Origin: Lepidodermella squamata
Taxonomy: Eukaryota; Animalia; Gastrotricha
Assembly: GCA_047495785.1 (NCBI GenBank)
Contig: JBLDXI010000013.1
Coordinates: 310,001 to 374,000, forward strand
Direction: 5' to 3'
DNA length: 64,000 nucleotides
The position numbers and the translations under genes were made by a program. The notes below the pieces were generated by a model. That model saw only the letters and a list, made by a program, of their open reading frames with translations. It ran no database searches and was not told the DNA's origin. Shown here piece by piece: positions 11,954 through 59,995 of the stretch (positions are counted from its first letter, which is position 1; each line of letters opens with the position of its first letter).

Positions 11954-14900
11954 GCAATGCCCTGGCGCAGCAAGAAGATGGTTCGATTTCACACTTACGG
12001 ATGGAGAACTATCACTAACTCGTTTCTGAATCTAGCTTAGGCATACTTCATTTGTAAATGTGTTCTAAAACTTCAATCGCGATTGTTTAATCGTTAGCAA
12101 AATGGGATTTCTCCTAAAAAGAGGAATGTTGTCTGTTTTAGCATTGTGAACGGCGAGCTTGTTTTTGAAAGGAGAAGATTTTTCGATCAACTCAGATCGT
12201 CATGTAAAAAACATCACAAGTCTCGCTAATGTGATCCTACAAATCAACTTGAACGCAATGTGAATCAATAAAAGCCTGTTTTTGAAAAGAGTTCTTTTTC
12301 AAAAGAGACGATGATTAGCCTCGCGCCATACTCTGAACATATTTCTTTGTTGTTCTATTGAATGGTGACACAAAGAATTAGCTCAGGGTAAAGAGCGATA
12401 GCTTTGAGAGTGGTAGAAATGTTCCATCAACAGTATGAAATCCGAGACTAACGTTCTCGTCAGCCAAGACCCGCTTAAGTATCGCTCAGCAGCTGGCTTT
12501 GCAACGTGGTCTAATCCTACTTACATGCTGGCCGGGTCGTAAAAACTAATATATTCTTGACATATCACCACCTGATATCGTTCGCGCTCTCCTAACAACT
12601 AAGCCGATTTTTTATTGCTTCAAACGCTGCGCGTAACGTGCCCAACGGCTCAACCGGTAGTGTTCAGGACTTTAAATAATGGAGCTATGCGCCGCCAAAT
12701 AAACGAGACAAATGTATGAAAATCATCGAAGATTTCTTGACTCAGCCAGGTTCGCAGTGGTAAGTAAAACGATCTGTGTTTCGAGTCGTAGAATATCTAC
12801 CTGAATGTACCTGAAACATGCGACACGTGAATTTCGCTGTCTGCTCTGCTGAGTCACCGGAATGAATATTTCTGCTGTTTTATTTGCCGATCAATTTAAA
12901 ATACTAACGTCGACTAATTTCAACATCAATAGTCATCAGTAACCTTCGTTTGAACATTTTTGAAACGTTAATAATCTTGGTAAGCATTGTTCACCGCTAT
13001 CCGGAGCTGATCAGATTGACACTTCATTCTGCCCGCATGCGAACAAACGATCAACGTTTGGTACACTGATTGTATCCTTTAATTCGGCTACCGTGTGACA
13101 TCTAGTAAACAGTGATAATTGTTTGCATTTCATCTACTCATCAGGATACTTGAGAGCAATCGATCACTGAAGCAATGCGATTTATTGTACAATTGCAGCA
13201 GTCTCGCAATTTCATCCTTGATCATGTGAATATTACAAGAATCCGATCAACATATAATCAGCAATTCGCTTTCACAGTGAGCTTCAAATTGTCATCTACT
13301 GTGATAAGAAAGTCTGAGCTTACTTATTACACAGATTGAGTTTCCATCATGAGGTCAGATGGGACGACATCTCTGTTGCAAATTAGAGAACCTTGATCAT
13401 CGATATTGAAGAATAGTGATGGGCAACTAGGTCTCTCTTAGTAACTATCGTATCACAAATTACCGAGTCTGTCTACCATGGTTTCAAGAACCCCATTTAC
13501 CACGACATCGCTCTGCGTCATAGAGTCAGGAATTACAATCATCTAGCAGTTATAGTTAGTTCATCCACGTATGTTGACAGCATTTCCCATCGTATTTTAT
13601 AAATCATCATTCGTCAATGATGTCACCATTCTGAATAACTGAGGCGCAGATCGTGAACGTAGGAGAGCTGAGGAGAAACTTGCGGTGTCCTCAGCAACGC
13701 AGTGAAACCAACAACCAACAACCAACATGAAACTAACAAGACTGCAAACACTGCTTTTATATTTCCTCTTCTCATGATGTATGCAACGAGCATTCAGCAT
13801 CAGTTGGGTTGATCGTCGCTAGCATCCGCGTACAGGCGTACGCAGACGGTGGCTTGAAGCTTGAATGGAATAACAATTTTATTATTCGCGCGCTTTAATT
13901 TCGTTGCTAAGAAAAAATATTTTTTAATATAATTATTATTACTTATTTTTAATATGGTTTATAATTTAAAATAAAATAAAGTTGAACAATGTTTTTCAAC
14001 TGCCAATAGGAATCGTAAACAAAATTCAAATGTGGCCAATGGCGGCCTCCTGTATAATGCGAAAGCCGCGTTGTACCGACGTTGGCACTGACCATGTTCA
14101 TGTACGTAAATTGATTATTCACCGTATATACAATGTGAACGATTTCTGCCCTCCATGTCTCTCTTTAACTGTCTTGTTTTAAATTGGTTGCAACTTCGTT
14201 TCCATTCACCTGGCTTCGTCCCAGTTATCTTCGGGTATTCCCGTTCTCGGTGTTACCAAATCACCTGTGACGAGCCACTAAGAAACCAAACCAAGTCACT
14301 AGAGTTTCTTTTACTAACACGCTTACATGGGATGTGTGCCAAACCAGCACGTGGGGTTTGGCGCCAAACTCGATTCTTATTGTTTGGTACTTTATTTTTT
14401 TCAGGATAATCTGAGCCTTGACTTGAAAGACATGAGTAGTGAGATGTTTTACACCTTCTGTAGCTAGAATCATCTTGCTGCTATGTCTTTCGGGCTGCGG
14501 TTCATCATTCATCAGCAATGCTATCTACTCTTTGTTATCGTTTTGATGCGGCGTTAAAATGGTGCGGCACGAGAGGTGGTGATGTGCTTATGATTTCAAC
14601 TAGGCCGTCATATCACAGCCTGCTTGTGTCCCACCATAGTCCGCAATGTTTGTATCATTGTTCTATTTTCAGATTCAAGTTATGGTTGGCCGTTCTGCGC
14701 AATCGCCTTTCTCCATTTATTTTGTGATGGATATTATTGTCTCGAGATCTTGTGAATAAAAGAATCGTTGCTTCCCCGTTCAGTGTTTTTGAGAAATTCG
14801 AGAGTTGAAGGGAAACAGATATCTAAAGGAAGTAGGAAGAGTGTTAGAAAGGGATGACCTCTGCTGTGTTAAGCTTGGAAGCTGTTCACATACAAGTTGC

Positions 14901-44917: not shown

Positions 44918-47330
44918 ATGTCTGATATCGAAATGCATCAACTCAGCGCAGCCCTGCCAGAAACCGGGTCCGAAAACGAGTTCTTCGTAAAAACCATGGC
45001 TCAAACGGCTTTTGCCTCCGACGGCATCCTCGATGCCAAGTTCGACTTCCGACTAACAAGGGCCCAGGTTGGCGAAGCGGCTTCCTCCATGAGTGGCGAA
45101 CCAGACTGGAAGCTGCTGTTCATCTCTCTGATCCTTCAGCACATCACTTCTGCGCCCATCAGGACCCGCGTTGTGAAGGCCATCGCCACCGCCTTCAAGG
45201 AAGCCCTTCTGCATGCTCCCCCCCCTCGCTGTTCCTGCTACTCTCCTGCCCTCTGTCGTCACCGCCTCTGCTGTACCGGATGCCCCTGCTGCTCTTCTTC
45301 CCCCCGGCCCTGGCTCTACTTCTGGCGCTAGCTACTTTCGTCGCCCTGCCCTGCCTTGCTCGCATTGCGGCAAACTTGGCCATGCTGCCAGCCGCTGTTG
45401 GGGGATTCTGGAGCGTCCAAAGCCAAAGCAAGCTAGCGATGACATGGCAAAACATCTCAAGCAAATGATCATGATGAAGATGCTAGCGAAACAACAAATA
45501 CCGGCGAAAAGATATCATCAACTGATACGGCAAGTTCAGCTGGCATCGAAACCTGGATGTGGCCGTATTCCAGCCCTGGAAAACGGGAAGGACGAAATGG
45601 GACGGCTCATCATGGTATCTGACGACATGGATAAGGCGCAGCTATTAGCCGATCACTTTCAAGAGAAGATGGAACTACCACCACGGCAAGGAAATTGGAG
45701 CGACGAGGTGCAAATTCTGGTAATAGCTAGCACAATTGCAGTCAGCAAATCGGAGATAGCTCAAAGACTGAAGCAGCTGAAACCAGGAAAGTCACCGGGA
45801 CCGAGCGGAGTCGGCACGAAGCCACTGAAAATGTTGGCCGACTGGATTTCAGAACCACTCGCACTGTTGTGGAAGAAAATGCTTCCTGAAGGTACCTGGC
45901 CATCAGTCTTCAAGGTCGTTAACGTATGCCCAATTTTCAAGAAGAAGTCTAAATCGAACAAGGCCAACTATCGACCCGTGGGTATGGGTGAACACGTAGG
46001 CAAAGTCCTGGAGAGAATACTTGCTGAACTAGTCGTAAAAACCGCGATAGCTAACGGAGTAATACCTCCAGAACAAGCCGCCTTCCTGTCAGGCTGCGGC
46101 ACAACCGATACCACTGTCCGTATTTGCTGTCCGTGGTAATCGACATCATCTCCGCGATAAACGACAGAAAATATTTTATCCTCCGCCAAACTGATGTTAG
46201 TGGGGCGTTCGACAGAGTGGAGAGATCTCTTCTTCTCGACATTCTTTGGAAATCTGGCATACAGGGACAAGTTCACGCTATGATCCGATCATTCCTGACA
46301 GACAGATACTTCCGTGTCTTGGTGGCCGGGGCGTCGTCGAGCCTTCGATCCGAAGATGCAGGTATCTGCCAAGGTAGTGCACTGGGGCCATCCCTCTGGC
46401 TCGTCTGGTATAGCGGAATCAGCCGATCGGCGCCCAAAATCGTGTCCGAAATCGTCGACCAGCCCAATTATACCACCCACCCGAGCCGTACACCTTCGCC
46501 CTTAACCTGGGAAGCACGAACCAATCAGATGTCGACATTGGAGAAGGCTATGCAGTGGGCGAGAGCTCACAGAGTCTCGATGGACCCGAAGAAGAGGATA
46601 GATACAAGGTTCTCCTATCCCCGTTTCAACTGTGGAAGAAGAAGACTGGATGAAGATAGCTCGCTTGAAAGCACCAACCCCTCGAAAGCGGGCCACTACA
46701 ACGCTACTGGGCCTAGTACTCGACACCGGTCTATCAATGGAGGAATGCATGACCAAGAAGATCGGTCAGGCCAACAGGGCAATCACGCAGCTCCTAAGAC
46801 TGAGACCTTACTTATCGACACGCCAGCTCGAAAATGCTTACAAGACCTACGTTCTACCATACCTCGAATTCGCTATGGTTCCATACACATTCGCGGCGTC
46901 GGCTAGCACCTTGGAGAAACTCGATGCAGTTCAAAACAGATTTGTGAAGATGACGGAAGCCAAATTGACACCGCTGGGCCATCGCAGATTCGTCGGGTGA
47001 TGACGTATCTCCACAAAACAGGTGGTAGCAGGTCGGGGGACGAAACAAGTCCGCTCGAAATTTATAAAAATCCCGAAGCCGAATACAAGAACGAGGGCAG
47101 CGAGCGAGAAACACCACCATCAACTACAGCTCGCAAAATCGTCGAAGAACAGGGTCGACACGGCACCTTTCCGAAGGATGCAAGAGATCGTCAATCAATG
47201 GAACGATACCTTCCCTGACACCGTCAACATCACAATATTTAGAGAAAAGTTGAACGTCCTAGGGCGTCGGCTATAAGCCTACTAATGATAACTGTGTGCG
47301 CCTGAATTTTTTCGTAAATAAAAAAAAAGA
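44918..47330 (+). mobile_element. Decayed LINE (CR1/L2/jockey-group-like RT) with a CCHC ORF1-like region, endonuclease missing, A-tail
   Basis: CSHCGKLGHAASRC zinc knuckle, KSPGPSG, PIFKK...NYRPV, DVSGAFDRV, ICQGSALGP, LLGLVLD, YKTYVLPYLEF. Several frameshifts; ends AAATAAAAAAAAA at ~47316-28. Confidence 0.9.
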
Positions 47331-48389: not shown

Positions 48390-48719
48390 CTCACAAGACC
48401 CTGTCTACGCTCGATATCTGGATTGTCAACGACGCTGCTCTCCATCTTATCGACGGTGGCGTGTCTGTTGGCGACCGACTTGGCAGCGACCACGGTGGAG
48501 ACGGTTCCACGCAGCACGCACGCGCCTGGAAACGCTAAACGACACCGAAATTGAATCAGTTTTACAAATAGATTCAGACTTCGTTATTCAGTTGCTAGGA
48601 TCAAATTCGCTCAAAGAAAATGGAAAGAAGTCTCAAGTCATGATTATCTTATAGTTCATCGGTACCAAAAATTACTATTACAGGTTTTTGAGGACAAACA
48701 AGTTGATCTGACAAAATCA

Positions 48720-49080
48720 ATGAAACTTCTCGGAGTAATTATCGATGACGACTATCGGAAACATGTCGATAAAGCATGTGCCAAAGCACGGAAATGACTT
48801 TTCGCATTAACTGTAGCATCAAAAAATGGCCTCAGTGGAAATTGTTTGAAAGCTATGGGCTTAGATTCTCCCACCTGCATTACAATAATCACCGCTTTTG
48901 TTCCGATTCAAGGTCATCGATATCCTGTAATGAAAAAGACGAATACACGGCTGGACAGAAGTCCAAACGAGATAACGTATATGTTTTATACGCTCTAAAT
49001 CGGAGGGCCTTAGAAGAATTTGGCTACCATTCCGTTGATACGATTACATTTCGCTGCAAGAGACTGGCAATGATCTGAAA
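48720..49080 (+). mobile_element. Old LINE (CR1/L2-like) RT C-terminal fragment
   Basis: MKLLGVIIDDDYRKHVDKACAKARK*LFAL resembles the post-RT KxLGVxxD...HxxxxxxKA motif. It contains stops and indels. Confidence 0.55.
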
Positions 49081-50119
49081 AAGTTATCTTTGAATTGATA
49101 GTAACACCGGTCTTTCACTGTATTGACAACTTGAAGGTCCACACCATTGATGCATCTGCTTCACATCTACATCCCATCTAACTATAATCTACATCCAACC
49201 TGGATGCATCCTAATTTTTCTTTGGAATTCTATTTGCCAAATAGTTCTAAAAATGCTTATAAACTGCAAACCCTCAAGATCCTCGGTACTCGGAAGCCTC
49301 GTTCTAAATGGGTGAGTTCTCATGCTAAATTAGTATTTCGAGACGAATCCAGCCGTGCAACTAGTTACTCATCTCATTGCATCGCTTTAAGGGTGGCGTT
49401 AAGACATGTCAATCATTCAGACACAGTTGATGGCTGAGCGAACGTTTTGATGGCTCGACTGCGTTGCCGACTGCATCTCTCTAAGATACGCGGCAAAAGT
49501 CGGTTCGACTACCAAGTATTAGAATGGCTGAACCCACGGCTCCAGATCGATGCTCGGAATCGCCAGGCCTCTTCATTGAGGTCAATGAACTTTTGCGCGC
49601 AACCTGAAAAATGATGACCGTCAACCGTCAATCAAAATCTAGGCTAACGCACTCGCCACGGTTGAATTCGTCTCTGCGGCAAAGTTTAAAAAAATGAAGG
49701 TCATATAATTTCAAAATTTGCTCAATATACTAATTTGCTAATGATTTATTTATTATTAGAGATATTTATATATCCTTGAAGAAAACGCACGTGCTTTATT
49801 TAACCAAGCCCGACTTGCATGCTTCCTGAGATGTTATAACTCCTCAGAATCTTTAGCCTGAACATCAGTTATCTCAATGCTGATAATACTTCCTCTCTAA
49901 TCCACTGCGCTGCAGTAAACCGTAATTCTGTCGTCAATGGTCTACCAACCGGCGTCCTTCGATTAAACAGGTTAGTCTTTTTTACTATATTTGCCGTATT
50001 GTATATGGCGGGTGTGATCAAAATGTTGACCAGGAGCTGCCTTCTGGTTGCTAACTTGGGAAGTTGGTTTGACCGTTGTGCAAGTTCACGTCTAGTTTTT
50101 TTCACACCCACTTATCAAT

Positions 50120-50168
50120 TTGATGAGCTAGTTCCGAACCTGTAATTTGATGAGTTATTCCTAACTGA
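50120..50168 (+). ncRNA. Candidate minimal box C/D snoRNA (intron 1)
   Basis: C TTGATGA, C' TTGATGA, D CTGA ending 71 nt before the acceptor. TTATTCCTA could pair with 18S UAGGAAUAA and AGTTCCGAA with 18S UUCGGAACU. It is unusually short. Confidence 0.5.
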
Positions 50169-50357
50169 TTCATTAAATTCATTTCATTTGTTACACAGTC
50201 ACTTGCCAGCTCTTTAAATGTATTTGTATTATCATTCAGATGCAGTTGCCGATTACTACCTCTCTGGCAATTTTCGGATTGATTGTTGCAGATTACTACT
50301 TTGCCTTACTGAATACTCATTAAGTAAGTATCAATGTGGATCCAGTGATTATCTTTC

Positions 50358-50419
50358 ATGATGATTTGCTTTGGTCCGTGTTTCTGATCAAGTGACGCTA
50401 GTCCGGCATTAATCTCTGA
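50358..50419 (+). ncRNA. SNORD18: Box C/D snoRNA, U18/SNORD18-like (28S Am649 yeast / Am1326 human equivalent)
   Basis: C ATGATGA, guide TTGGTCCGTGTTT plus D' CTGA complementary to conserved 28S AAACACGGACCAA, D CTGA 50416-19. Confidence 0.88.
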
Positions 50420-50571
50420 TACTTTTTATTCTCTATGTTCCCCGCTATCACATGTTTTTCCATCCGCGTAACTTCAGTTTTTTTCAGATGCCAATTCGGA
50501 AAGCATTCGACGTATCTGCATACATCGCCTTGTTTCGGTATGTCTAGTTTCCTGTCCGCCTGATTCGTCAA

Positions 50572-50627
50572 ATGATGTTTTCCGTGTTTCAACTGATCCT
50601 CTGCGATGTTAACCTACCTTTGCCTGA
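50572..50627 (+). ncRNA. Box C/D snoRNA targeting the second A of 28S UUGAAACACGGA
   Basis: C-like ATGATGT, guide TCCGTGTTTCAA plus D' CTGA, D CTGA 50624-27, terminal stem GTCA/TGAC. Confidence 0.75.
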
Positions 50628-50786
50628 TGACATTTTACAAAAATTTCCAACCCGAGTTGTAATTTTAGGACGGGCTTATACAAGTTTTCTGTATTTGCAG
50701 GTTGCCGTTTGCGCTCTCTAAACATTTGCATCGTCTAGTGATTAATGGTGAGTGATAGAATCATGAAATGCTTCATTAGTTATTTG

Positions 50787-50848
50787 ATGATGACCCCTTC
50801 TGGCTAGAGTTATGAATCTCTTTTGATATCACCCGTACCTCCTTCTGA
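50787..50848 (+). ncRNA. Box C/D snoRNA, target not identified
   Basis: C ATGATGA, D CTGA ending 68 nt before the acceptor. Same size and position as the neighbouring snoRNAs. Confidence 0.65.
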
Positions 50849-51010
50849 CTTGAGTGCAATCTTTGCAATTTTAATTGCGCATTGCAGAATTTGACTGATT
50901 TCTGTCTTCTTTCCAGGTCCGATCCTTCATGCTTTCATGCTGCTTCGCTCAATTTCTGCTGCTACCGTGGTAAGTAAACGTTGATTTTCCGTCTCATCTA
51001 AATTCTCTTA

Positions 51011-51073
51011 GTGATGATTATGGTTCCGTGTTTCATCAGATCTCAGTGACGATAGTTCCATGCACCACGCTGA
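51011..51073 (+). ncRNA. Dual-guide box C/D snoRNA (28S UGAAACACGGA and 18S Gm1271 yeast / Gm1328 human)
   Basis: C GTGATGA, TCCGTGTTTCA(T) plus D' CAGA, C' GTGACGA, CCATGCACCAC(G) plus D CTGA complementary to 18S GUGGUGCAUGG. Confidence 0.85.
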
Positions 51074-51219
51074 ATTAGGCTTATCTAATTATACTCTCAT
51101 TTGAGACATTTCATGCCCTAACTTGCTTGTTTTCTTTCAGACTGAAGACCCGGCGACGTCTTATTCGGAATGCAGCGATTGAGGTGAGCAAGGAACATTT
51201 TTAATTCATGCTACTTTGC

Positions 51220-51281
51220 GTGATGATTTGCTGGTCCGTGTTTCTGAGTGTTCATTGACGTTAACAAGGCATTTTCTCTGA
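51220..51281 (+). ncRNA. SNORD18: Box C/D snoRNA, U18/SNORD18-like, copy 2
   Basis: C GTGATGA, TGGTCCGTGTTT plus D' CTGA, D CTGA 51278-81. Confidence 0.88.
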
Positions 51282-51444
51282 CTTGATTTCATGTCTTATC
51301 TTCATTTTTTATTCATCTCTCGAAATGTCTAAGTCTTTGATTAATTACAGGTGATGTCTTCGATTACTGCTGTACGACACTCGATTCAACGAAATTTTAA
51401 GCAAGGTGAGTATGCCACTTCTTGCTTTTGATGATTTCCTAATC

Positions 51445-51504
51445 ATGATGATTATGGTATTTTGTCCGACTAATGTTTGACGACGCATCCATGCACCACT
51501 CTGA
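51445..51504 (+). ncRNA. Box C/D snoRNA with a snR40/U32-type guide (18S Gm1271 yeast / Gm1328 human)
   Basis: C ATGATGA, D'-like CCGA, C' TTGACGA, CCATGCACCAC(T) plus D CTGA. Confidence 0.85.
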
Positions 51505-51663
51505 CTTCCTTTCTACTTTGAAATGGAATTCGTTAAGATTTCAGAATTTTTCAGTAATACCAATTTTCTGTTGCAGATGATCACGCGCTGGTTTACCGAA
51601 AACCGCTACGGCTATATTGCTTAGGTGAGTCACTAATCAATCACTAGTTGAGAAATAACATTC

Positions 51664-51725
51664 ATGATGATTTGCTGGTCCGTGTTTCTGAGTTATCATT
51701 GACGTTATCAATGCATTCAACCTGA
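51664..51725 (+). ncRNA. SNORD18: Box C/D snoRNA, U18/SNORD18-like, copy 3
   Basis: C ATGATGA, TGGTCCGTGTTT plus D' CTGA, D CTGA 51722-25. Closely similar to 51220-51281. Confidence 0.88.
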
Positions 51726-51964
51726 TTTTTTTTAACATCGAAGAATGAATTTCGAGCACCTTTCTTGTAGTCAATTCTAATCTTTTCTTTTTACTTTTCA
51801 GATTTCGAAGATGGCGAACTATGAAACAACTGGGAATCTCCCGCAATGACAATATTATATTTATTATTTTTGTATTTAAATGTAAAAAGATGAATAAAAT
51901 GTGTTTAGAATATGCATTGTTTTCGCTGGTACCACTTTGAATAGTTGTCTTATGAATAGTAGTT

Positions 51965-53583
51965 ATGGGTAATTTGAAACTTTGCATAGCGTTCGCTGTG
52001 CTGAAGAGCATACTATATCTCTGGCCTCAGCCAGGCTTCATCCACCCCGACGAATTTTTCCAATCAGCCGAAGTCGCCGCAAGTTTGTCTTTGAGAAATG
52101 AAATGCCTGCTAGATCAGTGCTTTGTTACATTTAGAATCAACCTTATCGATCAACCCTAAGCTACCATGGGAGTTCCACGAATCTCTCACAACACCCATC
52201 CGCGCTTCGATTTGGCCCAATCTATTTGTCTGGCCTGGATTCTACCTACTCGACAAGCTTTCGCTACCACTCACGCCATTGATGGCTCTGAGATTTTCAC
52301 GTCTGATCATGTTTCTTACTTCATTTGTGTGCGATTTGGCGTTTTGGAAATTGGCCATGGCAGTTTTTAACAACAGAAGATCAGCATGGCTTGTTATGCC
52401 ATTTTGGATGAGTTCTTATTCGAATTGGGCTCTCATGCCTAGAACTCTCAACAACTCTGCCGAAACTTTTTTCACCGTCATCATGCTGCTGCTCATTTTC
52501 GACAATTTCAAGGTGAACAATTCGAGATTAGGACGGAGCAGTTTCTTATTAGGAGCTGTGGTAACATTCGGATCATTCTTACGTCCGACTTTCCCTATTT
52601 TCGCCGGTGTTCCTCTGTTGTTATGGCTTTTTAAGCTACGGAGAGATGCCTCGGCGCTATTTAAGTGTTTCTCAATGTTCACCCTGTCGGTATTCGCCAC
52701 TTCGTTGGCGTTAATTACCGCTGATTCAGCTTATTATCGGCGGGAAAAATTCGAAAATTTAATCGTGGATTTGCTGAGTGGCGAATCGATGTCGCTCACC
52801 CAATTGAGAGAAGCTGTCATATTCACGCCGCTTAATTTCGTCCTCTATCAGATGGATCAAAGCAATTTGGCGATTCACGGAATTCACCCGAGATTCACGC
52901 ATGCCGTTGCAAATTTGCCGATGCTACTTGGCCCCATTTACCTGATTGTAGGACTGCAAATTCTAGCCTCCTTAATTGGATCTAAAAGCGAAAATTCATG
53001 TGCTTTACTCTCGACTTGTTTCGTCGTTTCGCTGTGTGGAATAAGCACAGCCCCGCACCAAGAGCTGAGATTTCTCATGCCATTAGTTCCCATTTCATTG
53101 CTGATTTTCGGGCATTTTTTCCGGAAGTTGAAGCCAAGTGCTCAAAGTTTCTTGATTTTCGTGCATATCGCATTTAATGTTTCCGTTGGTTCGTTCTACG
53201 GCTTAATCCATCAAGCCCAAGTTGTTCGACTGGCCGATTTCGCCTCATCGCAAAATTCAGGTGGATCGAAATTTATGCTGACTTGTTCTTACACTTTCCC
53301 GAATTTTCTGCTGCCCGGGTCTTTGAAAAATGTAAAAATCGAGGATTATGGTACTATGAGTAAGCGTGAAGCTTTAACGCTGTTCTATAACACGAGCGCC
53401 TACTCTCACTCGAACAGCAACATTTTTGGCGTTGTTCCAATCAGTTATTTATCGGAGACTTCGAAATTTAAACCGATTGCTACGCTTTTCCCAGTTTTCT
53501 CCGGCGAGTGCCTCGAGGACTTATTCCGCCATGGCTTCCCAAACCTTCTTGACATTTTCACTTTTGCTATCGTTCGAATCTGA
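51965..53583 (+). CDS. PIGZ: GPI mannosyltransferase 4 (Smp3-like, glycosyltransferase family 22)
   Basis: Exon 1 carries [15 protein letters not shown]. After the 52083-52135 intron come PWEF...[51 protein letters not shown] and many TM segments. Confidence 0.88.
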
Positions 53584-53655
53584 TCACCAGATACTCATAA
53601 AATAATAAATTTATTGCAATACTTGATTCTATTAGGATTGGTTTTTAATTTAAAT

Positions 53656-55126
53656 ATGATATCATCCTCTTTCGACTTTGCGGTCGGTACCGATAATAAT
53701 ATTGTCAAAGGTTTGCTTTCTTTAAATATTGTTATAGTTATTAAGGAGGATTTTTAACAGGAATTTGCGGAGCTTCGGAAAGTTTCGTAAATGTCACCCC
53801 TCTATCGGATGCCAAGCAGGCTTTAGAAATCACGAGATTAGTCTGGAACGAAGAGTCGGATTGTGTAAGTAACGATTTTTTCGAAAAAACTACGCTGAAA
53901 ACTATTTTTTCAGTTATTTTTCGGTCGGAATGATGGCTCGTTTGGTCGTATGCCATTCAAAACAGCGAAATTCGAAACTGCTAGCGAAAAGTTGGACAGC
54001 TCCATCATCGGGCTTGAATTTATTAGCAAAAAGTTTGCCAGATTTTAAGTCGGTGATATGTTAAAATTCGTTATTTTTCAGAAAGGTTTTACTGTGCACG
54101 AAAGATGGATCGGTGAATATTTATAATCCGGCAAATTCAGAGGCTGAAAAGCTAGATTTCTCACCGGGCCCGAATCTCTTCTCCGCCCGAGCTTTCAAAC
54201 CAACCGCCAGCCGGATATTGATGGCGACGGGCGGGAAGGAGAACGAACTAAAATTATTCGATGTCGCCTCAGAGAAGAAGGAGCCGGTATTCCAAGCGAA
54301 AAACCTCGCAAATGACTGGTTGAGCCTGCAACAACCGATTTGGATCCGCGACGTCGGCTTCATCGACCACGACGCCGAGCAACCGAAACTGGTCACCGTT
54401 ACCGATAACGGTTTTCTCCGGGTCTATGACTCGAAAGTGCAGCGAAGACCAGTCATTAATGCGTCCCTGGTCGACCATCCCCTGGTCAGTGTGGCGGTGT
54501 TCCCGCCGGGCACGTCGCCCGGCCCGGTTCCGTTCATCGCAGCCGGGTCGGCGCAAGGCTGGCTGGGCATCGTCGACCTGCGACTGCCGAAAGCGGCGAT
54601 CGGGAAGCCGTTGCCTGGCAACTGCCAGACAAAACACCGGCTAACAGGCCGTTGTCGCAACGTGACCGGCAGCACGCGATCCATCGCTATTCTGCCGCGT
54701 GATGACGGCGCCCCGCTGCTGGTTTCGGCTGGTCTCGATCGATTCACGCGGGTTTTCGACACGTCGCTACCGAAAAGTGGCCCGATGGCGAAAATTTTCA
54801 CGAAATCGAAACTAACGGCGTTGGCGATAAATCCGAAAATAGACGCTGATAAATTGTTCGAGGCGATGAAACTCATTGATCAAACACCGAAGACGGTGAA
54901 GAGGGCCAAGTACGAGCCGGAAGATGACCCGAACCATCTGCCTGATTTGGTGCTTGGTTCCGATGACGAAGACGAGGACGACGATGAAGATAACGAAGAT
55001 GAAAGTGGATCTGAAGGAGATGACGATGACGACGATGAGGGTTCGGTCGAAGATTGCGGCAGTGTTGACTTGGACGATTTTGAAGAAAAAAATCAACGCG
55101 GGAAACGAAAGTTTGGCAGAAGATGA
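53656..55126 (+). CDS. WDR74: WD-repeat ribosome biogenesis factor WDR74/Nsa1
   Basis: ATGGKENELKLFD, FQAKNLANDWLSLQQPIW, LRVYDSKVQRRPV, SAGLDRFTRVFD, an acidic tail and basic C-terminus. Three short 5' introns. Confidence 0.9.
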
Positions 55127-57807: not shown

Positions 57808-59995
57808 TCACCAATGAGAAGGTGAAGACATAGGCGGGCGATTTTCAGCGTTTTCCGCGTCTTCAACGCTGGCCAAGTGCGAAAATAGCGGCGTGCTTTT
57901 AGCGAAGATGTCCATGCTATCGCATCGTTTCACCAGAGGCGAGGTTGTATTCGCTGCATGAGGCATCGAGTACGACGATAGTTGCCTGCGAACGAGCGGA
58001 TTTCTCCTTGCCACCCTAATAATAATTAAAAAATTAATTAAATTAAAAATAATTGAATTGATTTCAACTAACCGATAATGTCTGTTATTTTCATCGATAG
58101 CAATGGCGTTTTTCGACGACGGCTCTTGCGAGCAAGACAGCCGGCTCGAAGCGTCGGAGGTGGCTGAGCAGCTCGCGGATAGCGGCGAAATCGCAGACTG
58201 GCCGACGCTTTTCACGAGGCGATCTTCAACGGCGCTCATCGTCTTGTACTTTTTCCATTTCCGAAGTTCGGTGTTGTGCTCCTCAGCATGCATCGGCGTG
58301 TAACCGCCGAATGGCTCGAGCAAGTGGCACTGGTTAGTACCGCAGCAGTACTCGTAGAACGCCTTGTAGCCGCCCTGAAGCATGTAAACTTCGGGATAGT
58401 CGAGGCGCGGGTAGTTGTTGCGATTGCGGTGACGATCGAGCTTGCGGAACGCCTTCACCATGTCCGGCGCGCGTTTGCTGCTGAACTCGCAGTGGAAAAT
58501 CAGCAGCGTCCGCTTCGGGTCGCCGTTCTCATCCAACGAGTCGTCGGACGCTTCGTGGTCGTCGAAGAACTGCTTCAACAACGGCTCGGCCTTCGGGTGG
58601 TTGACGGCGCCCTTGATGTGGCCGCCTTCGTGTTCGTACGGGTACCGGCAGTCGATGATGTGGAAATTCTTCACCTTCGACTTGTACTTGCCAGCGAGTA
58701 AATTCGCCAGGACAGAGCACTCGATTAAAACGGTGCTTTCGTGCGGCTTGCAGGGCAGCAAATAAGGCCGCGAGCCGTCGCCGATCATGCAAGTGTCCGG
58801 CGGCGCCTGGTGCGAACTTTCTTCAGCAGTTTTCGTCACGGTGACAGCAGACGAGGAGGACGCGAGAGGCGTGCACGTGGATGGCGCGCTTGTTTGGTGT
58901 TGCAGCGGGGTTGAAAGCACCGAGTACGACTGCGAGTGGGCCAACGAACGTTTTGGTTCCGATACAGCGTTTTCTTTGATACACTCCAGCTGCGATTTCA
59001 GTTTTTTCGCATCACCGAATGGCGAGCCGAACGGCAGCCGGCTGAGGTTTTCGAACGACGACTGGTCCATGCAGTCGGAGGTGGCGACGCGCTTCAGGCT
59101 GTTGGACCGAGGCAGCGAGTTGTTGCGTTGCGTTTCATTCGTCACGGCCGTTGCGAACAGGCTCTGCTTGCCGAGCGACTTGCGGATGAAAGCAGTAGGC
59201 GATGTCGATGACGTTTGCTGCGCCAAGATGCCGCCGCCGCGGACCAGCGCTTGAATGTGTTGCGGCAACGACGGGCTCGGCGAGCAGTGTTTCGGCGTCG
59301 AGCCGCGGCTTCGAGAACGTATCGCGATGACTCGACTCTGCGGTGTGCCAGGGCACGGCGAGGCGTTGAAAGAATCGTGGCTGGCTTCTTGCGACGGCGA
59401 GAGGAGAGCTGAGGGCGAGAACGCGAAATTAGACGACTCGTTGATGACTTCGAGCGGCCGAGACGACGGCGATGACGTGGCCGTGCTTCGCTGGCTGTCG
59501 GACCACGACTGCAGGGACGACGAACCGAACCCAGAGTCGACAGACAGTTCGTTGAATGTCGAAGACCGCCGCCGGCCCCACGCCGCTTCGACTGTCCTTG
59601 ACTGAGACAGGCTATCGTCGAGTCCAGGGCTATTATAAATTTCAGTAATGAAAACGTGACTCAATTCCAGGGCCTTGTGCTTACAATTTTGTTTGCTCAT
59701 CGGCAATCACCAAGGGTGACAAGCGACCGACATTAGCGGTAATGTTGCCTGAAAACATAAAATGGGGTCATTTTATTTTATCAAGGTTGACCTTTGAGAC
59801 TACTTACGTTTATTGTCAGGCCGCCGACTTGGCGTGCAGTGTGGCGGACTGTTCGACAGATCTTCATCGTTTTGGCAATCGCTGATCAGCCTTAATAATT
59901 AGAAACAAACATTATGAATAACGAAAACTCGACTGCCTGGTAAAATAATACCTCAATGGCATACGCGACGAGCGATGTTTAGCTAAAAGCGGCAT
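57808..59995 (-). CDS. CDC25: M-phase inducer phosphatase CDC25/String (proximal-start model)
   Basis: IIDCRYPYEHEGGHIKGAVN, catalytic FHCEFSSKR, YPRLDYPEVYMLQGGYKAF, S/P-rich N-terminus with SVDSG. The 5' exons splice in phase. Confidence 0.93.

Follow-up and report, generated by a model that had tools for sequence, protein, structure and literature searches.

A 2-kb stretch of the Lepidodermella squamata genome is very probably a spliced gene without a protein product, with eight introns that each hold a small guide RNA for rRNA methylation. It lies in a window of 64,000 nt (assembly GCA_047495785.1, contig JBLDXI010000013.1, forward-strand positions 310,001 to 374,000), and all positions below are those of the window unless otherwise stated. 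Judged from the sequence, we are highly confident that it is a non-coding Pol II host gene of UHG/GAS5 type. The anatomy of the locus, its complementarity to the rRNA of other eukaryotes and its pattern of conservation were observed directly. A sequence-only reading of this DNA had proposed a GAS5/UHG-type host with U18- and U32-type guides, and that proposal is borne out by guides to invariant rRNA, a fixed spacing between box D and the acceptor, and a syntenic relative with kept guides and unrelated exons. The predicted gene is laid out as follows.

49788-49793, no strand assigned: CACGTG E-box, candidate Myc-type promoter element (weak, with 11 CACGTG in the window)
49889-49970, plus strand: exon 1, opening with a 10-nt pyrimidine run (49889-49898), a candidate TOP/TCT start
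49971, 50324, 50538, 50748, 50970, 51184, 51406 and 51625, plus strand: donors of GT-AG introns 1 to 8
50239, 50487, 50700, 50916, 51140, 51350, 51576 and 51801, plus strand: preferred acceptors of introns 1 to 8
50008-50112, plus strand: 100-nt hairpin that lengthens intron 1 (z -3.4)
51802-51915, plus strand: final exon, carrying AATAAA at 51893-51898 (approximate 3' end)

Eight GT-AG introns of ~160-270 nt with one C/D unit each had been claimed, and donors, acceptors and units could all be located. With the preferred acceptors, the predicted introns measure 269, 164, 163, 169, 171, 167, 171 and 177 nt from first to last. All eight acceptors are pyrimidine-rich, and a second candidate acceptor is found in four of the eight introns. 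Exons range from 43 to 114 nt and would join to an RNA of about 575 nt. The other introns of this region, put at ~55 nt in the earlier reading, are indeed shorter: four introns in the adjacent genes, PIG-Z and WDR74, measure 49-53 nt, as compared with 163-269 nt in the host. The pyrimidine-rich opening and the closing AATAAA are likewise present as motifs (49889-49898 and 51893). The eight units are the following.

50120-50168, plus strand: unit 1 (intron 49971-50239), compact C/D RNA, weakly SNORD50-like
50358-50419, plus strand: unit 2 (intron 50324-50487), putative U18-type guide for the 28S Am1313/yeast Am649 site
50572-50627, plus strand: unit 3 (intron 50538-50700), putative guide for the Am1310 site (fly Am796 equivalent)
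50784-50848, plus strand: unit 4 (intron 50748-50916), putative D' guide for the U52/snR78 helix of 28S
51011-51073, plus strand: unit 5 (intron 50970-51140), putative double guide, with D' (CAGA) directed to the 28S Am1310 site and D to the 18S Gm1328 site
51220-51281, plus strand: unit 6 (intron 51184-51350), putative U18-type guide
51445-51504, plus strand: unit 7 (intron 51406-51576), putative U32-type D guide for 18S Gm1328/yeast Gm1271
51664-51725, plus strand: unit 8 (intron 51625-51801), putative U18-type guide

Every host intron contains a single box C...CTGA unit of 49-65 nt (8/8), with box C close to its 5' end, internal D' and C' boxes, and box D at its 3' end; some of the internal boxes are degenerate, and degenerate boxes among the units include CAGA and CTGT. 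The distance from the end of box D to the acceptor is 67-76 nt in all eight introns, and that from the donor to the start of box C is 34-41 nt in seven, a spacing that resembles the conserved placement reported for C/D RNAs in introns (PMC8162545). Eight such motif pairs in 2 kb are far above chance (~0.3 expected), because just 16 comparable pairs were found in the rest of the window (~126 kb of strand, both strands counted). An Rfam search of the window at gathering level found no snoRNA. Below gathering, matches were specific: SNORD18 for units 2, 6 and 8 (E 7e-4 to 3e-3), and Me18S-Gm1358 and the SNORD32/33 family for units 5 and 7. A profile built from the units found no further copy in the window or in the marine sequences L001-L004.

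Duplexes were evaluated with rRNA from unrelated eukaryotes (rDNA contaminating bacterial assemblies, none of it taken for human), this animal's own rRNA having been looked for and not found. The rDNA loci were fetched with a probe pattern, and those recovered carry the expected landmarks. Targets were called by the D+5 rule, under which the methylated base lies five upstream of box D or D' (PMC8162545). Units 2, 3, 5, 6, 7 and 8 carry an rRNA antisense element of 11-15 bp beside D or D', within the 10-21 nt expected of box C/D guides. As a control, CTGA sites in the window were paired with reference rRNA: 8 of 609 had at least 11 Watson-Crick pairs, and six of those eight are host units. The other two pair with variable rRNA and have no box C. 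Second guides of units 2, 3, 4, 6 and 8 were rejected as functional, having background-level matches only and differing in the relative.

The relative is represented by two marine metagenome contigs, L003 and L004, which were found through a 40%-identical PIG-Z-like homolog; no second relative was found. Directly upstream of PIG-Z and WDR74, which they share with the window, these contigs carry six intronic units. Their order is U52-type, Am1310-type, U18, U32, U32, U18, close to that of window units 4-8. In L003, box D lies 62-79 nt from the acceptor, and the first one or two introns hold no recognisable unit. Conservation was assessed exon by exon, joined exons being used only for ORF lengths, and no window exon aligned with an L003 exon better than shuffled controls. 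Since the guides are kept and the exons match at shuffle level while the neighbouring PIG-Z and WDR74 proteins are 40% and 60% identical, selection acts on guides, boxes and splice geometry and not on exons, as expected of a non-coding host. The host had been called lineage-specific; it is common to this one distant relative and was found nowhere else, but the term holds in no wider sense. Note also that L003 9415-9472 is a recent duplicate of a U32-type unit, with box D altered to CTTA, and that the D' at L003 9011 reads CGGA.

Units 2, 6 and 8 form 12-15 bp in 16/16 rDNA loci, and their D+5 base is the A methylated by U18 (unit 2, SNORD18 33 bits, E 9e-4, 15-bp duplex with one G-U; unit 6, 31.2 bits, 12 bp; unit 8, 33.5 bits, 12 bp). 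They share the D' guide and predicted target of SNORD18 (RF00093; human Am1313, yeast Am649, fly Am799), and their number equals that of the U18 copies in human, namely three. Because their scores of 31.2-33.5 bits fall under the SNORD18 gathering score of 41, we call them “U18-type”, as functional equivalents. Units 3 and 5 form 11-12 bp on the same target helix, but there the D+5 base is the A three bases upstream. Unit 3 has 12 bp with 28S in 16/16 rDNA loci and a matching register at L003 8754-8812, and unit 5 has 11 bp at each of its two targets. Both 28S sites are mapped elsewhere, as fly Am796/Am799, Dictyostelium Am841/Am844 and human Am1310/Am1313 (PMC11014333, PMC8817022, PMC13736010). 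The Am1310-type target is named here by its site only, because no paper that connects SNORD126 with A1323 turned up in our literature search.

For units 5 and 7, the D+5 base is the 18S G of U32/snR40, which places them with U32/SNORD32, snR40 and fly Me18S-Gm1358 (RF00133, RF00533) at the same Gm1328/Gm1271/Gm1359 site. As in U32, the Gm1328 guide adjoins box D; the score is 22.5 bits, as against a gathering score of 44 for SNORD32/33 (RF00133). The second guide of human U32 is directed to 28S Am1511 (PMC5597630), unlike that of unit 5, which is predicted to act at the 28S Am1310 site. Unit 5 has the ends of U32-type copies and the 5' guide of Am1310-type copies. It could be a recombinant, or it could be an ancestral double guide that has since decayed in the sister units. 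The 5' guide of unit 7 looks decayed. TTATGGT directly after box C is kept in all four U32-type copies (51011-51024 and 51445-51458; L003 9190-9203 and 9415-9428); no target was found for it, and the 5' guides of these copies differ. Predicted targets of the units agree with methylation sites mapped in other species (PMC8817022, PMC11014333, PMC5597630).

Unit 4 forms 10 bp, including two G-U, with the GACUCUAG helix of 28S (non-self rRNA), in which the candidate bases are a C and a U. We take this helix to be the site of yeast Um2421/human Um3904 (the U52 site), and the placing is consistent with the TtnuCD15 alignment. U52/SNORD52, snR78 and Tetrahymena TtnuCD15 all have D' guides that pair with the same helix; Rfam gave unit 4 no match to U52 or snR78. 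The D' box of unit 4 (ATGA) sits one base closer to the guide core than it does in TtnuCD15, and the D+5 rule therefore selects the C that directly follows the usual U. In both species D'+5 falls on this next C and not on Um3904/Um2421, and 17 nt of unit 4 are identical in L003 (8550-8566). The shifted site (equivalent to yeast 2422/human 3905) does not appear in the methylation tables consulted (yeast, human, Arabidopsis, Dictyostelium and fly), and the fly map lists no methylation in the target stretch of unit 4. Either this lineage methylates the C beside the usual U, for which we would give a little better than even chances, or the RNP reads a +4 register.

Unit 1 (49 nt) is the weakest of the eight, and we regard it as a real guide with fair, not high, confidence. 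It shares with U50/SNORD50 (RF00278) the CCGAAC guide end and the D' position, but scores 16.7 bits as against 42, and its second guide is unlike that of U50. Its target could be a 28S Gm2863-type or an 18S Gm867-type site: with non-self rRNA it forms 7-8 bp, including wobble, at the 28S U50 site, and 7 contiguous bp at the 18S 867 site in one rDNA locus, and neither pairing is convincing. No counterpart was found in L003, and a search of metagenome contigs with a pattern from its two guides returned chance matches only and no rRNA. The 3' half can form a competing 14-bp hairpin that holds C' and D (50144-50179). An 11-nt direct repeat covers both C and C', and unit 1 may have arisen by a small duplication. 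At L003 8086-8130, a donor-like site is followed by a stretch like the unit 1 guide without a proper box C, possibly a decayed copy of unit 1. The 100-nt hairpin of intron 1 is single copy, absent from L003 and without an Rfam family. It starts 37 nt past the donor, the position at which box C starts in other introns, and it may loop out to give standard intron geometry or be part of a longer RNA. It was rejected as an H/ACA RNA or a pre-miRNA, having no H/ACA boxes in place, a 3-nt loop and no Rfam match.

From established snoRNA biology we infer transcription, splicing, processing, methylation, the TOP start and NMD. The pre-RNA would be spliced, and each intron lariat, once debranched, would be trimmed down to a box C/D snoRNP of 50-70 nt (fibrillarin, Nop56/58, Snu13). 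The spliced exons (about 575 nt, short ORFs only) would be a by-product, probably removed by NMD. Base-paired to pre-rRNA, the guides would set 2'-O-methylation at the fifth base upstream of box D or D', which gives the 28S Am1313 site (units 2, 6 and 8), the 28S Am1310 site (3 and 5), the 18S Gm1328 site (5 and 7) and the U52 helix (4), so that three or four rRNA sites would be methylated. The cluster would have grown through guide copying from intron to intron.

The pyrimidine run at 49889-49898 is the only YCTYTYY match in 49600-49970, and both species have a TOP/TCT-like run ahead of their first donor. At ~1.2 such motifs per kb by chance, the run is common enough that it could be fortuitous. 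CACGTG with a similar A-rich 5' flank is also found at L003 8405. It lies ~100 nt from the TOP/TCT-like run in both, upstream of it in the window and within an early intron in L003. In fly, the Uhg genes are targeted by Myc (PMC4430873), and the run together with the E-box would fit growth control of the kind seen in those genes and in ribosome-biogenesis genes (PMC4430873, PMC2570694). The two motifs are short, though, and transcription could start further upstream. Two genes follow the host.

51944-53583, plus strand: PIG-Z-like mannosyltransferase gene (PF03901; ATG at 51965; 53-nt intron)
53635-55126, plus strand: WDR74/Nsa1 ribosome-biogenesis gene (WDR74 E 2e-26; unpaired YAG at 53635, ATG at 53656)

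The PIG-Z ATG stands 67 nt after the end of the host AATAAA, with unpaired YAG at 51944, 51959 and 51962, and WDR74 follows PIG-Z in the same way. In L003, which also has an AATAAA (9809), the gaps at the same two junctions are tighter, 45 and 34 nt. Same-strand genes no more than ~100 nt apart, with a poly(A) signal and then an unpaired acceptor, are an operon feature, seen here at two junctions in both species. Because there is little room for promoters between the genes, an operon headed by the host is likely, though by our estimate only modestly so. More generally, the nine exons may form the 5' portion of a longer transcript: they would be the leading cistron of a host > PIG-Z > WDR74 operon resolved by spliced-leader trans-splicing, or else a cis-spliced 5' leader of the PIG-Z mRNA. 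The close junctions tilt us slightly towards such a transcript. The AATAAA kept by both species speaks against a plain leader, and PIG-Z translation would be hampered by 575 nt of leader containing several ORFs; any longer transcript must be set against possible internal promoters within the last introns of the host. The snoRNA part would work as in a stand-alone host, and only the transcription unit would differ. The combined proposal, in which a growth-regulated trans-spliced operon, host > PIG-Z > WDR74, opens with the host as a non-coding cistron and unit 4 is a slipped U52-type guide methylating the next C, is possible but doubtful as a whole.

Elsewhere in the window, mir-71 (14418-14499) is followed by a mir-2 seed at ~14615, the usual protostome cluster (14418-14640, plus strand). 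This cluster and coding introns of ~50 nt mark the window as that of a compact-genome protostome. Upstream of the host, ORF translations read as frameshifted non-LTR retrotransposon-like reverse-transcriptase ORFs (45213-47200 and 48600-49080, plus strand), the first of which had no Pfam match. L003 has a myosin-light-chain-like EF-hand gene in their place. A Cdc25/string phosphatase lies at 57808-59706 (minus strand), with a 75%-identical homolog in the same marine samples (L001/L002).

The longest ATG-led ORF is 35-109 aa over all acceptor choices and 63 aa in the preferred model. The 27-aa ORF of the earlier reading does end with exon 2 and fills it (50240-50323). That description needs slight amendment: exon 1 holds an earlier 9-codon ORF (from 49937), and the preferred model contains the 63-aa ORF, with lengths of up to 109 aa if less likely acceptors are used. 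A host that encodes a small protein (27-109 aa by acceptor choice), with the snoRNAs as guests of a fast-evolving coding gene, is improbable: exons 2, 3 and 8 begin with ATG and one splice choice yields the 109-aa ORF, but the first host ORFs stop far upstream of later junctions, with stops upstream of many junctions, and the exons are unlike those of the relative though the neighbouring proteins keep 40-60% identity. A conserved long ORF, which the earlier reading had named as contrary evidence, did not emerge from the exon-by-exon comparison, and local ORFs on either strand matched no Pfam family. Still less probable are chance motifs, or a decayed, no longer expressed array of snoRNA pseudocopies, in which scores under Rfam gathering, degenerate boxes (CAGA, CTGT) and second guides that mostly match nothing would find a place, since two distant species have kept their splice sites, spacing and guides intact and the enrichment over background is large.

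As a non-coding host, the locus can be compared with known systems. Human U18 is hosted in RPL4 and human U32 in RPL13A; thus human U18 has a protein-coding host, whereas the U18-type units here have a non-coding one. Such a host fits the known picture in which snoRNAs move between hosts while their targets stay constant (PMC3511168). Our literature search found no paper on gastrotrich snoRNAs, and the locus is a further snoRNA host, missing from annotation, in a protostome that has been little studied. If true, a one-base shift of rRNA methylation and a non-coding host heading a probable operon with a 60S assembly factor would be added, neither of which would change the general mechanism. The layout itself is already well known from Drosophila Uhg and the mammalian GAS5/UHG (SNHG) 5'TOP hosts, which have many short non-coding exons and one C/D snoRNA per intron, as here. 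Candidate motifs are present for their pyrimidine start, poly(A) signal and E-box near the start. Their fixed distance from snoRNA to acceptor is matched by 67-76 nt in the window and 62-79 nt in L003, and their poorly conserved, non-coding exons by shuffle-level scores and a longest preferred ORF of 63 aa. Compared with fly Uhg and mammalian GAS5, the host here is far more compact (2 kb), is packed nose-to-tail with two coding genes and carries a different cargo (U18-, U32- and U52-type and Am1310 guides), the likeness being one of layout.
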